From the sequence record MW749006.1: a stretch of 64,000 nucleotides of DNA; one strand, given 5' to 3'. Of this stretch, positions 8,802 through 20,355 are shown piece after piece. The number at the start of each line of letters is the position of its first letter. The first letter of the stretch is position 1. The position numbers and the translations under genes are program-made. The notes beneath the pieces are model-generated. The model worked only from the letters and a program-made list of their open reading frames with translations. It had not been told where the DNA came from and made no database searches.

Positions 8802-9380
8802 ATGTCTAAGAAATTTAATCCCGAGAAAAAGAAGTTGGCTAAAGTTGTTAAAAGTGTTGTTGATAACGAAGAAGTAATCATTGACATTGAAGATGACGAA
8901 ACGTTCCTAGCTAACAACCCAGTTGACTGGAATGATCTTAACAAGTTGAAAGATGATCTAGGTAATACGATTCTAAACTTTGTTGGTCAAATCAAATCAA
9001 CCATTGAGAACCCACAGGTAGTTAATAACTTAGGTGATCGTGCTGATGAGTTCAAGAAGTTAGTTACTTTGTTCTTCTCTGACATCAGTGATTTCAGTAG
9101 CCAAGTCAAAACAACCCGTGGTGAACATGAACATCGTAGTGGTCGTATTACTTCACTAGAAGACTATAACACTTACAATCGCTTAGCAATCACTTACCAC
9201 AATCTTTACATGGAGTTAATCTCTTTAACTTCACCAACTATGTCTAGTATTGTAATGTTGATCTCAGACATTACAGCTGACATGGATATTAAAGCTAAGA
9301 AAGAAGCTGAAGAAGCAATCGCTGAAACAGCAGAAGTTATTGAAGTTGAAGCCAATCAGGAGAACGTTAAAAATGACTGA
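8802..9380 (+). CDS. Hypothetical helical protein
   Basis: 192-aa ORF with SD AGGAG, overlapping the next gene. Confidence 0.75.
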   Translation: MSKKFNPEKKKLAKVVKSVVDNEEVIIDIEDDETFLANNPVDWNDLNKLKDDLGNTILNFVGQIKSTIENPQVVNNLGDRADEFKKLVTLFFSDISDFSSQVKTTRGEHEHRSGRITSLEDYNTYNRLAITYHNLYMELISLTSPTMSSIVMLISDITADMDIKAKKEAEEAIAETAEVIEVEANQENVKND

Positions 9381-11076
9381 TCAGAAGAACGATGAAAAAC
9401 CACTTAACATTGATGACATTACTAAGGAAGATTTGATAGTTCCTGAAAGTACATCACCTACGGGTAAGATCCTTAACCACGGTTATGAGACTACAATAAC
9501 TGAAGAAGAAGAACCTGTTCTTGATTTGAACGATGATGAGTTAGATGAAGTTGAAGAAGAAGACACTTCATTAGACACTATGTTTGATCAAGATCAACCT
9601 GAAGTGATTGTAGAGGCACCTAAGGTAGAAGAGAAGGTAGAAGAGAAGCGTAAACCTAACGCGCGTGTAGAACAATCTATTACTTCTTCTGAACCCTTTG
9701 AGAAAGGTCACACGGTAAACCTTCCTTCAGTTGGTTTAACTGAGTTTAACGAAAAGATTCAACAGTTCAATAAAGTAGACATTGAAAACTTAACTGATGA
9801 ACTAACTGCGTGGCGTGAAGTAAGTGAAGGTGCTGTTGAGTTCTATACTCCTAACGACACTTACTCTGAGCGTTTTACAGATCCTACTTCTGAATTCCGT
9901 CAAGGTATCGAAGATAAAGAAGGTAATCTTTCTGGTATCGCTCCCGTTAAGTTCCGTAGCGGTGGTGGTGAGCTTAAAGGTAACGCTGCTGTATTGAAAG
10001 TATCTCGTATGTTAGGTTTAGGTGATGTTATTAATATCCCTTTACCACACTCAGGTATCTGGGTAACGATTAAACCAGCTACAGAGAAAGACTTAATTGA
10101 CTTCTACAACTCTATCTTTAGAGAGAAGATCATGCTTGGTCGTTCTACTTATGGTTTAACTTTAACTAACTTCTCTACGTACGTTAACAAACGCTTGTTT
10201 GAGTTCATTGTTAACAAACACGTCCATGCGGTTAACTATGATAAAGAAGCTATTCCAAAAGAGAAACTACAAGACTATATCCTCATCCATGATTACCATG
10301 TTCTTGTGTGGGGTTTTATCTGCAGTCTTTATCCTAATGGGTATAATTATAGTCGCGTCTGTGTTAATGACATTGAGAAGTGTACCGCTAAAGAAGAAGC
10401 TAAACTAAACTTAGCTAAACTACTTTGGATTGATAACAAGTCTTTGTCTGAAGTACAGAAGAATATTCTTTATGAAGTTCGTCCAGGTAAACTGAACTCT
10501 GAACATTATAAGAAGTTCATCAGTGAACATACTCGTGTGTCTTCCACTGTACTTACTCTTAAGCAAGGTATCAAAGTTACTTTCAAAGTACCTACCTTTG
10601 CTGAACATATTGAAGACGGTATGAGTTGGATCACTACCATCAACAATAAGATCGAGAGTGAGATCATTGATGCTGACTTGAGCGATGATAAAGAAGAAGA
10701 AGCTAAGAATGAACTACTGACTCAGTATGTTAAGTCATCTGCGTTACGTAGTATCAGTCACTTCATCGACTACATTGAGTTTACTGAAGATAAAGAGATT
10801 GTAACTGATCGTCGTAGTATCAGTCAGATCTTAGAGACTATCTCTGGTGATGACGATGTACGTGAGAAGATCACTGAAGCTGTTCTTAAGTTCCAGTCAG
10901 ATACTACCATTGCTCTTATTGGTATTCCTGAGTACACATGTAAGTCATGTAACTCACCACAGAACACCGATCCTTACAACGAGCGTTTCTCTTCGGTGAT
11001 TCCTCTTGATGTATTGGGTCTGGTTTTTTTACTCCTAACTTCGAAGATCTGGAAAATCCTGGAACGGGAAGTTTAG
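9373..11076 (+). CDS. Conserved jumbo-phage protein, 567 aa (putative tail/baseplate assembly chaperone, unshifted product)
   Basis: ATG 9373 with SD AGGAG; acidic N-terminus; C-terminal CKSC motif; slippery T TTT TTA at 11025-11031. Confidence 0.7.
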   Translation: MTDQKNDEKPLNIDDITKEDLIVPESTSPTGKILNHGYETTITEEEEPVLDLNDDELDEVEEEDTSLDTMFDQDQPEVIVEAPKVEEKVEEKRKPNARVEQSITSSEPFEKGHTVNLPSVGLTEFNEKIQQFNKVDIENLTDELTAWREVSEGAVEFYTPNDTYSERFTDPTSEFRQGIEDKEGNLSGIAPVKFRSGGGELKGNAAVLKVSRMLGLGDVINIPLPHSGIWVTIKPATEKDLIDFYNSIFREKIMLGRSTYGLTLTNFSTYVNKRLFEFIVNKHVHAVNYDKEAIPKEKLQDYILIHDYHVLVWGFICSLYPNGYNYSRVCVNDIEKCTAKEEAKLNLAKLLWIDNKSLSEVQKNILYEVRPGKLNSEHYKKFISEHTRVSSTVLTLKQGIKVTFKVPTFAEHIEDGMSWITTINNKIESEIIDADLSDDKEEEAKNELLTQYVKSSALRSISHFIDYIEFTEDKEIVTDRRSISQILETISGDDDVREKITEAVLKFQSDTTIALIGIPEYTCKSCNSPQNTDPYNERFSSVIPLDVLGLVFLLLTSKIWKILEREV

Positions 11077-11525
11077 GTTATATAGCTAACCAGTGGTTCG
11101 GTTACGATATAGGCTTCGAAGGGTATTTAGAATTAGTAAAGGAAGCTCTTACAAAGTTCAAGCTAAGTAAGAACTACCTTTACAACAAACAACTACTAAT
11201 AGAACTGTACGAGACTAAGTTCGGTATACGTGATCACATTAACCATGGTGGTGGATTAGCTTCTGTTTCGTTTAACGATTCTGAGAAGTATATGCACAAC
11301 TACTTATACGAGAAATACTTAAGTAGTTTCATGTACCGAAACATAGGAACAAAGCTTAACATAAGTTTTGATGATTATATAGATAGACCAAGATACGATA
11401 TAGAGACGATCAATAGACTAGCTGACAAGATGGATCAAGAGAAGATTAAAGCTAACTCAGACACTCTAGGAGATCTTGAGAAGAGTTATAAAGATCCAGG
11501 TAAGAAAGACTCAATGTTAATGTAA
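11031..11525 (+). CDS. -1 frame extension (probable programmed-frameshift product, ~717 aa in total)
   Basis: The -1 frame is open from 11010 to TAA 11523-11525, with no ATG/GTG/TTG until 11292. It reads FTPNFEDLENPGTGSLGYIANQWFGYD...YMHNYLYEKY... Confidence 0.6.
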   Translation, partial: TPNFEDLENPGTGSLGYIANQWFGYDIGFEGYLELVKEALTKFKLSKNYLYNKQLLIELYETKFGIRDHINHGGGLASVSFNDSEKYMHNYLYEKYLSSFMYRNIGTKLNISFDDYIDRPRYDIETINRLADKMDQEKIKANSDTLGDLEKSYKDPGKKDSMLM

Positions 11526-11527
11526 CT

Positions 11528-11557
11528 CTACCACCTAGGAGCAATCCTGGGTGGTAG
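11528..11557 (+). terminator. Hairpin with GCAA tetraloop
   Basis: ctaccacctagga-gcaa-tcctgggtggtag; related to 38666-38691. Confidence 0.6.
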
Positions 11558-11577
11558 ACATTGGATTGTTTTATAGC

Positions 11578-14131: not shown

Positions 14132-16276
14132 TTACTGTTGTGTTAGCTTATCTTGTTCTATCTTAAACAACTCACCTACTGTAAAGTTGTCATCAAGTAT
14201 CACTCCTAAAGAAGCTAAAATGATTCTTTGTTGACTAGTAGTATCTAGAATGATTCGTTTGATATCAATGACTCTTAGAATCTCATCTGGTATACCACTA
14301 CCTTGAATGTAAGTTTCGTTGATGTACATAGTTGGTAAGTCTTTCTTGTTGTGATCTTCTAACCACAAACCAAACCTTTCAGCTAAAGCTCTATCTTCAA
14401 TACCATCTAACCAATCCTTAAGTTTAGTTCTACTTGTTATAGTAGTAGGTATCTTGATGCAGTCATAAGGAGGAGCTTGCCACTCACCGTACTTAGGAGC
14501 AAAAACGTTTTGCCATAGAGTGTGTCGTTGGTAAGGAGATCTCTTCTCGTCTTGAGAGTACGAGTCTGGAGTATTTACTTTACTTTTACGTAAGTACATA
14601 GCCTCTCCACGGTTAACACTATCAATGATGTCTGTCTCAATACCAACTATATCTCTGATGACATCGTTGAGTTTAATCTTCTTGTTGTTACTAACTGACT
14701 CTAAGATATAATCCATTAACTTATATCCACGCTCAATCACGTGTGTTGGTATAGCAGAAGACTGTAACCCAACCCCTTTAATCTCAACGTCAGGTTTACG
14801 GAAAACGTTACCTTCTTGAATTACGGTCTGTGCAAAGTAATGTTTACTAAGTTCAGTTGTAATGTGAGTTAACCACAAGTACTCGTTCTTCATAGCTAAA
14901 GTGTGTAGGAACTCTTTATCTACGTTCATGTTACTGGACAAGATAGCTAACTTGTTTACAATCGCTTGTGATGCTATATAAGACACTACACCAGCTAGTC
15001 CGATAGTTTCATCAGTTACAATGTAATCTCCTTTATACCAAGTGATCCACTCGTCTAGCGTAAAGCAAGTTGAGTCAGTGTCACTAAGAACAACACAGCG
15101 ACGTAACATGTTCTTTAAACGGAACGAGTTAACTGGCATCTTGTCGTTCATAAAGAAAGTGTTGAAGAACAACTGGTACTTATACAACGTAGAGATAAAC
15201 TGTTCTGCTGTCTTGTGTAAAGAAGAAGCTAACGAAGTCTTGTTCATCTCAGCGTAATCTTTACCTTTACCTTTAACATCAGTAAAGAAGATAGTATGTA
15301 CGCAGTTCATTACAGATTCATCTATTGTGTATAACACAGAAGGATCATCCATAACCTCGTCACTAGTAACCTTAACTAATAACTCAGATAACAAGTTACG
15401 TAAGAAACCATCGTTAAACTTTCTAAGGTGGTATAGGTCACCAGAATAACAAATCATAGCTAGTTGATATGAGTTTAAGTTATTAAGGAAAGGAATAATT
15501 CTAGTAGCATAATAGTTGTTATCTGAAAAGTAAAGATCTGTAGAGAACTTAAGAACTTCTACAGTGTCTTCTACGGTTGGTAAGTGTAAGTTGAACTTAG
15601 CTACAGTTTGTTGTATAGCTTCTAAGTCAATTTCAGTAGTCATGTAGACCATGTAGTTAAGAACGTCTTCAGGAGAAGGAAGGTAACGGTTACCTGCTAT
15701 CAAGTGCTCGTTACTTGCGTTACTTAAACTAGTGATGGTTCTAGTAATAGATGTTAACGTGTTATGTGCTGTTGGGTTATGAAGCACACAAGCTCTGCTA
15801 CTAAACACTCCAGATAAGGAGTTGTTACGAATCTTCATGGTGTTTTGTTGATAGTTCTTAGCAACAGATAGTTCCATGTTTCCATCAGCTTTAGCTTTCT
15901 GACTTTCTTTCTTTGCTATAGCACGCTTACGTACGTTTTGAAAAATGAACTCTGACAGAATACTTTTCTTCACACTCATATTAACATAAGAAGTAAAGGT
16001 AGGTACTAAGATATTCTTACTAGCTAAGTTCTCTTTTATATAAGTCATCAGAGTAGAGTCTTTAACTACCCTGTCTCCGTTCTCTTCCCTATGGAAATGT
16101 TTGATGTTCTTATCTTTAAAATGTGTCTTTACTAATGTAATGGCCTTCTCTCTTGCTACACTCAACGGTAGTTGTTTACTAGTAGAGATGTAGTGAGTCA
16201 ACTGTTTTACGTATTCGTTAATAGGATTAAGCTGACTGTTATATTCAGTTTTATCTTTGAAGAAAATGTCTTTCAT
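14132..16276 (-). CDS. Split family-B DNA polymerase, palm motif B/C subunit (phiKZ gp50-like)
   Basis: Motif B QQNTMKIRNNSLSG, motif C LSDTDSTCF, later K-x-Y-like SKHYF and KGV elements. Confidence 0.8.
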   Translation of the reverse strand: MKDIFFKDKTEYNSQLNPINEYVKQLTHYISTSKQLPLSVAREKAITLVKTHFKDKNIKHFHREENGDRVVKDSTLMTYIKENLASKNILVPTFTSYVNMSVKKSILSEFIFQNVRKRAIAKKESQKAKADGNMELSVAKNYQQNTMKIRNNSLSGVFSSRACVLHNPTAHNTLTSITRTITSLSNASNEHLIAGNRYLPSPEDVLNYMVYMTTEIDLEAIQQTVAKFNLHLPTVEDTVEVLKFSTDLYFSDNNYYATRIIPFLNNLNSYQLAMICYSGDLYHLRKFNDGFLRNLLSELLVKVTSDEVMDDPSVLYTIDESVMNCVHTIFFTDVKGKGKDYAEMNKTSLASSLHKTAEQFISTLYKYQLFFNTFFMNDKMPVNSFRLKNMLRRCVVLSDTDSTCFTLDEWITWYKGDYIVTDETIGLAGVVSYIASQAIVNKLAILSSNMNVDKEFLHTLAMKNEYLWLTHITTELSKHYFAQTVIQEGNVFRKPDVEIKGVGLQSSAIPTHVIERGYKLMDYILESVSNNKKIKLNDVIRDIVGIETDIIDSVNRGEAMYLRKSKVNTPDSYSQDEKRSPYQRHTLWQNVFAPKYGEWQAPPYDCIKIPTTITSRTKLKDWLDGIEDRALAERFGLWLEDHNKKDLPTMYINETYIQGSGIPDEILRVIDIKRIILDTTSQQRIILASLGVILDDNFTVGELFKIEQDKLTQQ

Positions 16277-18642: not shown

Positions 18643-20355
18643 ATGTCAACTGAAAAAGTTGTTAAGAGTGAAGTAAGGTTTGCTTGGCATTTACCTAAGA
18701 ACGACTATCGTCCTGACTTACATTACATTCGAGAGGATTTGACGTACGCAGATGGTTTTGTTAAACCTAACATACGACTAGTGAAAGACTACGAACGTCC
18801 AGTGTGGGTAACTACACAAGCTTTCAGAGACCATAAAGATAAGAAAGAGTATGAGTACATTGATCGGTTAAACATCATTAGAACTACACAGTCAGATATG
18901 ACTTCTAATGTTGCTAAATTATTAGGTCAAGGACATTTAGCTAACAACCCTAAAGCTGTTAAAGATAGTCCTTATGTATATGGATTAGATGTTACTTCTA
19001 CTTCGTTAATTAAGTTAGCTAGTTTGAAACGTAACGACTACACACATACACCTTCAACTGTAGCTACCTTTGATATTGAAACTCAGATTGGTCACAACGG
19101 TGAGATCCTTATGGCTACTATAGCTATGAAGGGAAAGACTCACACTGCAATCATGAAGAGTTTCTTACCAGGTATACCTGACCCTGAAGCTCGCATCAAG
19201 AAAGCATTCAAATATTACTTACCTCAGTATGAAGACTTAAACACTATGTTTAGTTTTCATGACGATGAGATTAGTATGTTGAGACATATCTTTCGTATAG
19301 CTAACGAATGGTCTCCAGTATTCTTAGCTATCTGGAATATGGACTTTGATATTCCTAAAGTGTTAGAACGAATTAAAGCTAAGAACGGTAATCAAGCTGA
19401 GATCATTTGTGATCCAAACATTCCAGCTTACGCTAGAACTTGTAGATATCGTCAAGGTCCTTCTAAAAAGACAACTCAGTCAGGAAAGGTCACACCCATT
19501 CACCCAGCGCTTCGCTGGCACACTCTTACAACTAGCTCTACTTTCTATGTAATCGACGCCATGTGCGTCTACAGACAGCTTAGAATGGCTGATGCTGCTT
19601 TACCTAGCTATAGTTTAGATTATGTTCTCACTAACGTACTAGGAACAGGTAAACTTAAGTTCACAGAAGCAGATGCTTACGGTGGTGCTAAGTGGCATAC
19701 TTTTATGCAAGAGAACTATCCGGTAGAATATATCGTATATAACATCTATGACTGTTTAAGTATGTTGGAGTTAGAAGAGAAGACTGGTGATCTAAGTAAG
19801 TCACTTCCTTTCTTTGCTGAGATTACAGACTTTCAAAAGTTCAATAGTCAAGTGCGTAAAGTAACAGATGCTGCTTTCTTGTTTGGTCTAGAACATAACC
19901 GAGTAATTGGCACTGTTGGTAATGTCGATTACGACGAAGCGGAGGAAGTTGAGTTACCTGAAGAAGAAGATCTCTTAGGTGAAGACGGTGAATATGATCC
20001 TGAGAAGTTTAAGACTTTAGACTTACGAGATTGGATTCAGCTATTACCACAAAACCAATTGTTGAAAGGTGGTCTTAAGTGTTTAGAAGACTACCCTGAC
20101 GTAGTAACTAACGTTAGAGGTATTACCTGTGACTTAGATGCTACTTCTTCTTATCCTTCGTGTACGTTAGTTGGTAACGTATCTAAAGAGACTTGTGTAG
20201 ATGAGTTGATTGAGATTGAAGGTATTAGAGAGAACGTGTTCAGGGAACAAAACTTAAGCATTTGTTTAGGTGGAGTTAATACCTTAGAATACTTTAATAA
20301 AATGTTTGGCTTACCTACACTAGAAGAGATAGATAAGCTATTTGAAACTATGTAG
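18643..20355 (+). CDS. Split family-B DNA polymerase, 3'-5' exonuclease plus motif A subunit (phiKZ gp82-like)
   Basis: ExoI FDIET, ExoII WNMDFD, ExoIII YNIYD, and polymerase motif A DLDATSSYPS. Confidence 0.8.
   Translation: MSTEKVVKSEVRFAWHLPKNDYRPDLHYIREDLTYADGFVKPNIRLVKDYERPVWVTTQAFRDHKDKKEYEYIDRLNIIRTTQSDMTSNVAKLLGQGHLANNPKAVKDSPYVYGLDVTSTSLIKLASLKRNDYTHTPSTVATFDIETQIGHNGEILMATIAMKGKTHTAIMKSFLPGIPDPEARIKKAFKYYLPQYEDLNTMFSFHDDEISMLRHIFRIANEWSPVFLAIWNMDFDIPKVLERIKAKNGNQAEIICDPNIPAYARTCRYRQGPSKKTTQSGKVTPIHPALRWHTLTTSSTFYVIDAMCVYRQLRMADAALPSYSLDYVLTNVLGTGKLKFTEADAYGGAKWHTFMQENYPVEYIVYNIYDCLSMLELEEKTGDLSKSLPFFAEITDFQKFNSQVRKVTDAAFLFGLEHNRVIGTVGNVDYDEAEEVELPEEEDLLGEDGEYDPEKFKTLDLRDWIQLLPQNQLLKGGLKCLEDYPDVVTNVRGITCDLDATSSYPSCTLVGNVSKETCVDELIEIEGIRENVFREQNLSICLGGVNTLEYFNKMFGLPTLEEIDKLFETM

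Follow-up and report, generated by a model that had tools for sequence, protein, structure and literature searches.

Tail assembly chaperones of the phage lambda G/GT type are reportedly made in two forms by a frameshift that is conserved in tailed phages, and a frameshift in the capsid gene of phage T7 is said to give the proteins 10A and 10B. Programmed transcriptional slippage on runs of A or T reportedly operates in Thermus dnaX, in Shigella mxiE and in insertion sequence (IS) elements. Here we describe a locus to be set beside these systems, in Bacillus phage vB_BspM_AgentSmith (GenBank record MW749006.1, 200,233 bp). It was found in a stretch of 64,000 nucleotides (nt), the window hereafter, whose coordinates are those of the record (100% identity). 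Judged by homology, its gene AGENTSMITH_11 is the Chimalliviridae core gene cg18, of the phiKZ gp077 family, with direct homologues in Goslar gp081, phiKZ gp077 and RAY gp267 that lie in the same gene neighbourhood. Comparison of related loci indicates that this gene is very probably read in two frames by way of a conserved T run, giving a short and a long protein. The site would be a recoding site of a known type in a new gene family. The elements of the locus are the following:

9373..11525, + strand: putative single gene in two frames (cg18 / phiKZ gp077 family with a -1-frame extension), listed in GenBank as AGENTSMITH_11 and AGENTSMITH_12
9373..11076, + strand: zero-frame open reading frame (ORF), AGENTSMITH_11, encoding the short product of 567 amino acids (aa)
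11010..11525, + strand: open stretch of the -1 frame, predicted to encode a conserved helical extension (phrog_7580 / phrog_12109) and ending at its own stop
11010..11076, + strand: frame overlap at the end of the zero-frame ORF, containing the slippery T run
11292..11525, + strand: AGENTSMITH_12 as annotated, a hypothetical protein of 77 aa that begins at the first ATG of the -1 frame

As in the lambda G/GT pair, the -1 slip here would fall near the end of the upstream ORF and add a C-terminal extension, its signal is conserved over a large phage group despite divergence of the proteins, and a fused ORF is not seen, suggesting a fixed ratio of the two forms. Unlike lambda, the upstream product is 4-5 times larger, the tape-measure gene is not adjacent, the heptamer is a U run instead of G GGA AAG, and a homologue of the cg18 protein (Churi) was detected early in infection. 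No likeness to the chaperone family, in sequence or in fold, was found in Pfam, NCBIfam, PHROGs, PDB or BFVD. The lambda analogy drawn in an initial annotation of the window bears on the mechanism alone; membership in the G/GT chaperone family fails on gene position, sequence and fold. With T7 10A/10B the locus would share a -1 shift on a U-rich site near the stop of a phage gene and a minor, C-terminally extended form, but the extension here comprises ~160 residues, forms a conserved domain, belongs to another protein family and is conserved across a family of jumbo phages.

Conservation of the T run and of the open -1 frame across related loci

The initial annotation had described a 567-aa ORF with an X XXY YYZ heptamer ahead of its stop, and a -1 frame that stays open for 164 codons, has no start for the first ~87 and would be called by standard annotation just as a 77-aa fragment. 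All of this is present in the record. The AgentSmith run consists of seven T and forms the heptamer T TTT TTA in zero-frame phase, shortly before the zero-frame stop. The open stretch of the -1 frame spans 11010 to 11525, 164 codons of it past the run, and the first ATG, GTG or TTG in this frame stands at 11292, 87 codons on. GenBank leaves an unannotated gap between AGENTSMITH_11 and AGENTSMITH_12, and the latter is a truncated call of the -1-frame extension. Runs of seven T occur only five times in the whole 64-kb window.

Related loci were collected from IMG/VR, from JGI metagenomes, from close relatives in four independent assemblies and from six divergent representatives; the LucasX protein, used as an IMG/VR query, gave no matches. 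The 45 distinct loci include those of phiKZ (L010; NC_004629.1, 69439-75512), Goslar (L011), SPN3US (L012) and RAY (L013); Wellington is labelled L003 and PCH45 L014. The initial annotation had proposed conservation of the heptamer and of the frame overlap in homologues as a check on its claim of a programmed -1 shift with products of 567 and ~717 aa, and the comparison supports that claim. A T run lies within the frame overlap at all 45 loci, with a length of 5-9 (five T at one locus, six at six, seven at 14, eight at 23 and nine at one, hence 7-9 at 38 of 45), and T TTT TTN in zero-frame phase is found at 40 of them. In 45/45 the run falls where the -1 frame is already open, and the frame extends for a further 150-181 codons (median 160). 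Its first canonical start comes at a median of 51 codons past the run, AgentSmith (87 codons) and phiKZ (84) lying well beyond that. The six divergent representatives, which were picked afterwards and are out of sample, have the arrangement in 6/6 cases.

At five loci, L002 (Vibrio phage pVp-JHP1101), L018, L031, L050 and L051, the run is short or out of phase (5-7 T) and the -1 frame is still open; these lineages may have a less efficient shift, or may be drifting to independent initiation.

The arrangement of run and open frame exceeds chance. In the body of the AgentSmith ORF the -1 frame contains 99 stops in 550 codons (18%), so that the chance of an open overlap is ~0.06 for this locus; in the body of the large gene at related loci, 13% of the -1-frame codons are stops. 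The naive product of the open-overlap chance over 37 loci is ~1e-36, a value that overstates independence since the loci are related. The aligned Phe-Phe codons read TTT TTT throughout, apart from a few lineages in which the second is TTA or TTC, while TTT makes up about half of the Phe codons elsewhere in the same genes; the naive probability of the fixed TTT is 1e-21.

Coding constraint in both frames and the lack of a fused ORF

At the protein level the -1 pieces from 32 loci can be aligned, and conserved motifs stand far ahead of the first Met. This Met lies past column 80 of 218 in 25 of the 32 aligned pieces, and no start position is conserved. We also compared variability by codon position among AgentSmith and four close relatives. 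Over the 215 nt from the zero-frame stop to the first ATG, third positions of the -1 frame vary at 48/72 sites, and first and second positions at 18/71 and 7/72. The annotated 77-aa part behaves in the same way (45, 21 and 10 variable sites at third, first and second positions of the -1 frame). Upstream of the overlap the variation follows the zero frame, with 61/95 variable sites at its third position, and the overlap itself varies less (12/67 sites). By this pattern of substitution and the protein alignment the -1 stretch is coding, and it usually lacks an early start codon. The zero-frame tail is likewise conserved as protein family-wide and is part of a confidently predicted C-terminal helix (residues 547-566); selection thus appears to act on both products.

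No single-ORF fused version was found among 138 homologues of the large protein or among the best 150 of 1,640 matching representative clusters. The 138 homologues are all 465-568 aa long and all end at the zero-frame tail. The clusters came from a profile search of 1.84 billion representatives, in which 1,053 of the 1,640 matched at E <= 1e-30, and in the best 150 the match ends within ~10 residues of the protein end. The absence of a fused ORF from any lineage points to a set ratio between the two forms as the object of selection.

GenBank lists the downstream piece as a separate small gene in pVp-JHP1101, Wellington, LucasX, phiKZ, Goslar, SPN3US, RAY and PCH45; that of phiKZ, PHIKZ076.4, encodes 80 aa and follows the large gene after a gap of 219 nt. 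In every one of these genomes the small gene belongs to the -1 frame relative to the large ORF. This frame has no stop between the small gene and the last part of the large ORF, and the T run sits within the frame overlap. The annotated starts are ATG, GTG or TTG, 12 to 84 codons past the run and, in RAY, before it. Thus PHIKZ076.4, Goslar_00082, SPN3US gp226, RAY gp266 and Wellington gp52 share the -1 frame and have unrelated start positions. The initial annotation had named a separate downstream gene with its own start in homologues as evidence that would speak against a shift. Such a gene exists in annotations only, where the starts are scattered and usually fall inside the conserved protein. 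PHIKZ076.4 and its counterparts appear to represent one and the same conserved extension, cut short or lengthened arbitrarily by gene calling. Among 5.8 billion proteins, only three of at least 90 aa that resemble the -1 piece have been called in this clade.

Proposed ribosomal slippage and its alternatives

With moderate confidence, and on the strength of these comparisons, we favour a programmed -1 ribosomal frameshift at U UUU UUN, by which AGENTSMITH_11 and the frame of AGENTSMITH_12 would be one gene with two proteins. Most ribosomes would stay in the zero frame until its stop codon and so produce the protein of 567 aa, in which the final residues complete the C-terminal helix. A minority would move back by one nucleotide at the U-rich heptamer, which is U UUU UUA here and U UUU UUN family-wide, and continue in the -1 frame, so that the end of the helix would be replaced by a helical extension of ~164 residues, giving a protein of ~717 aa. 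The whole cg18 / phiKZ gp077 family of nucleus-forming jumbo phages would have inherited the arrangement from its common ancestor, and selection would hold the two forms at a constant ratio, as it does in other frameshift pairs of phages. What the sequences show is the signal, its phase, the open frame, the missing start, the coding constraint in the -1 frame and the family-wide conservation; a slip on the ribosome, how often it occurs and what the two forms do are inferred.

Several observations weigh against this reading. The canonical heptamer is missing at five of the 45 loci, and in some lineages a start codon follows soon after the run, e.g., 6-12 codons on at L058, L049 and L003, where independent initiation may coexist with the shift. 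RNAalifold found no conserved stimulatory structure at the site. The weak hairpin that the initial annotation had seen downstream of the AgentSmith heptamer does exist (-13.5 kcal/mol), but it is no better than expected from shuffled sequence (z = 0.17; 109/200 shuffles fold as well or better), and a hairpin specific to one clade reaches no more than 70% pairing and shows weak covariation. No Shine-Dalgarno-like element upstream of the run was evident by eye. All 45 sites are pure T homopolymers, as transcriptional slippage would also need, and the support for the trans-frame protein comes from sequence comparison. A literature search, itself incomplete, yielded no mention of a frameshift or of slippage in a gene of the gp077 family, and an earlier description elsewhere is possible.

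Programmed transcriptional slippage is a serious rival, which we hold to be rather unlikely on balance, and sequence alone cannot tell it from ribosomal slippage. Here the polymerase, probably one of the phage's multisubunit RNA polymerases, would stutter on the template A run, and a fraction of the mRNAs with altered run length would encode the long form, with the same two products as in ribosomal frameshifting. The homopolymeric make-up of the sites fits this well, as there is no mixed X XXY YYZ among them and 38/45 have 7-9 T; runs of about this length are reportedly so used in Thermus dnaX, Shigella mxiE and some IS elements, where, as here, a homopolymer of 7-9 stands at the junction of two otherwise unconnected frames. 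The lack of a conserved stimulatory RNA structure also suits it, and so does L031, with its seven T outside the canonical phase. Here, however, unlike in those systems, the run stands in the ribosomal heptamer phase at 40/45 loci, a point tempered by the conserved zero-frame Phe-Phe, which would yield much of that phasing anyway; some runs have just 5-6 T; and the polymerase would be a phage-encoded multisubunit enzyme. The seven loci with 5-6 T are short for efficient stuttering, and two of them, L016 and L047, have only six T and keep the canonical heptamer, so that a ribosomal signal fits them better than a run-length signal.

We give little credence to two separate proteins, the downstream frame being translated from a non-canonical start or through re-initiation past the zero-frame stop, and the T run being kept merely because it encodes the conserved Phe-Phe. 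Every public annotation does have two genes, some lineages do have an in-frame start soon after the run, and just past the zero-frame stop there is a purine-rich stretch with a conserved Ile/Leu codon after it; T4 gene 26 is said to have an internal AUU start. But this explanation leaves unaccounted for a -1 frame open to the run in 45/45 loci, given its 13% of stops in the gene body, and equally the fixation as T of the Phe codons and of the preceding third position, against local codon usage. Moreover, the start position is not conserved in the alignment, and AgentSmith has no ATG, GTG or TTG for 87 codons.

That the arrangement is an artefact or a product of decay, a miscalled homopolymer in the AgentSmith assembly or a broken pseudogene in the AgentSmith isolate, can practically be dismissed: homopolymers are error-prone, and the GenBank record does have, almost at its very start, a run of 12 G (positions 23-34 of the window) that resembles an error of sequencing or assembly at a contig end, but close relatives of 73-92% identity, from different samples and four independent assemblies, share the run length, the phase and the frames, which excludes an assembly error (the indel the initial annotation had allowed for) or a private mutation, and the arrangement recurs at 45/45 family loci, reference genomes included, with purifying selection on both frames.

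Protein family, neighbourhood and implications of the putative two-frame gene

The large ORF and the -1 piece were searched as separate sequences throughout. The large ORF matches phrog_4585 (E 4e-85), for which PHROGs assigns no function, and the two families matched by the -1 piece, phrog_7580 and phrog_12109, are without assigned function as well. By tblastn the large protein was found in 201 phage records, all of phiKZ-like jumbo phages, the phiKZ match being PHIKZ077. In the core-gene table of Prichard et al. (2023), cg18 (Goslar gp081, phiKZ gp077, RAY gp267) is a "hypothetical protein"; the table covers the large ORF only and describes neither the downstream frame nor the shift, and the same paper mentions one chimallin-encoding phage of a Gram-positive Bacillus. 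At 50% identity the family falls into at least 1,640 representative clusters in metagenomes. The neighbourhood had led us to suspect the nuclear import factor PicA/Imp1 (phiKZ gp069), an idea that was rejected since the homologue in phiKZ is PHIKZ077. Relatives of the AgentSmith clade in metagenome contigs L024, L029 and L031 have 21-26% G+C, so that chimallivirus-like phages seem to infect very AT-rich hosts.

The AlphaFold2 model of the zero-frame protein was good from residue 91 on (predicted local distance difference test, pLDDT, 78; predicted template modelling score, pTM, 0.78). Residues 91-567 are predicted to be folded, the C-terminal helix of residues 547-566 taking in the zero-frame tail. 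Residues 1-90 (9373-9642) are acidic, of low complexity and predicted to be disordered (pLDDT 30-45), and their length varies among relatives. Four Cys are invariant family-wide, from Bacillus to Pseudomonas phages (C330, C337, C523 and C526, the last two as CxxC), a conservation that suggests a structural metal site. For the small piece only three homologues were usable and the AlphaFold2 model was poor (pLDDT 41), so it was not used for fold search; the extension is predicted to be helical at the level of secondary structure.

Neither piece matched Pfam or NCBIfam, a Pfam search with the alignment of the small piece gave nothing useful, and PDB gave no match by sequence or by profile and nothing below E 0.8 in a fold search with the zero-frame model. 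In BFVD the same model found its chimallivirus homologues first (E 1e-34), followed by proteins named "baseplate hub assembly protein, T4-like" and "baseplate hub subunit" (E 1e-4 to 1e-2), which cover about half of the query at a target template modelling (TM) score of 0.4-0.55. In addition, 8/55 clade members match PF12322 (T4_baseplate) weakly, with a best E of 1e-4. These are likely the source of the GenBank product name of AGENTSMITH_11, "putative baseplate hub assembly protein", and the likeness is remote. The T4 gp26-type hub protein thus resembles the cg18 protein in these fold and Pfam matches and differs from it in that the cg18 protein is about twice as long, the AgentSmith protein itself has no match to PF12322 at E <= 1, and no solved structure matches. 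We know of no frameshift in T4 gp26.

A morphogenesis role of the large protein is unproven, as the likeness to gp26 is remote, gp81 and gp82 go unmentioned in the paper on the Goslar virion structure, and the Churi homologue of gp077 is among the proteins detected early in infection. Of the initial description as a jumbo-phage morphogenesis gene, the assignment to phiKZ-like jumbo phages was correct, and morphogenesis rests on the remote T4 gp26-type likeness. It is a quite unlikely idea that a gp26-like hub-assembly protein, of which an ancient frameshift yields the long form in a low and constant proportion, is the G/GT counterpart of contractile-tail jumbo phages; if so, the missing assembly-chaperone pair of phiKZ-like phages would be identified and T4 gp26-type proteins would be linked to the frameshifted chaperones of other tailed phages.

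Two features flank the gene:

8802..9380, + strand: upstream neighbour AGENTSMITH_10, 192 aa, in the place that PHIKZ078 has in phiKZ
11527..11558, + strand: strong hairpin directly 3' of the -1-frame stop (-25.6 kcal/mol, z = -5.0)

The hairpin has 14 bp, and 0/200 shuffles were equally stable. Its T tail is weak, so it is no textbook terminator, but it is likely the end of the transcription unit; its position after the -1-frame stop, and not after the zero-frame stop, fits a single unit with its end past the extension. The hairpin overlaps with the GTG annotated as the start of AGENTSMITH_13 (11551), a start call that may therefore be wrong. AgentSmith and its relatives share a gene order in which a DUF7484 gene of 278 aa is followed by one of ~190 aa and then by the large gene, and a comparable layout, with gp078- and gp079-like genes upstream, is found in phiKZ, Goslar and RAY. 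The neighbours of the gene pair in AgentSmith are hypothetical proteins and DNA polymerase pieces, and no tape-measure gene is annotated nearby, in agreement with the initial annotation; in relatives the neighbours include a helicase and RNA polymerase subunits. Elsewhere in the window, 14132-16276 (- strand) and 18643-20355 (+ strand) are both annotated as T4-like DNA polymerase, with three genes between them, which suggests a split polymerase.

The gene cg18 / gp077, with its function unassigned, belongs to the core genes by which nucleus-forming jumbo phages are defined, and the long form was missed by all genome annotations examined. The question can be put to existing proteomic and transcriptomic data for phiKZ-like phages, and the locus offers gene callers and frameshift predictors a clear case to recover. 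If the shift is real, the site would be, with its at least 1,640 clusters, among the most widely conserved phage recoding sites outside tail-chaperone genes. The annotated downstream "small hypothetical proteins" would then be truncated artefacts, and every genome of the family, phiKZ included, would hide a conserved domain of 150-180 residues fused to the cg18 protein.

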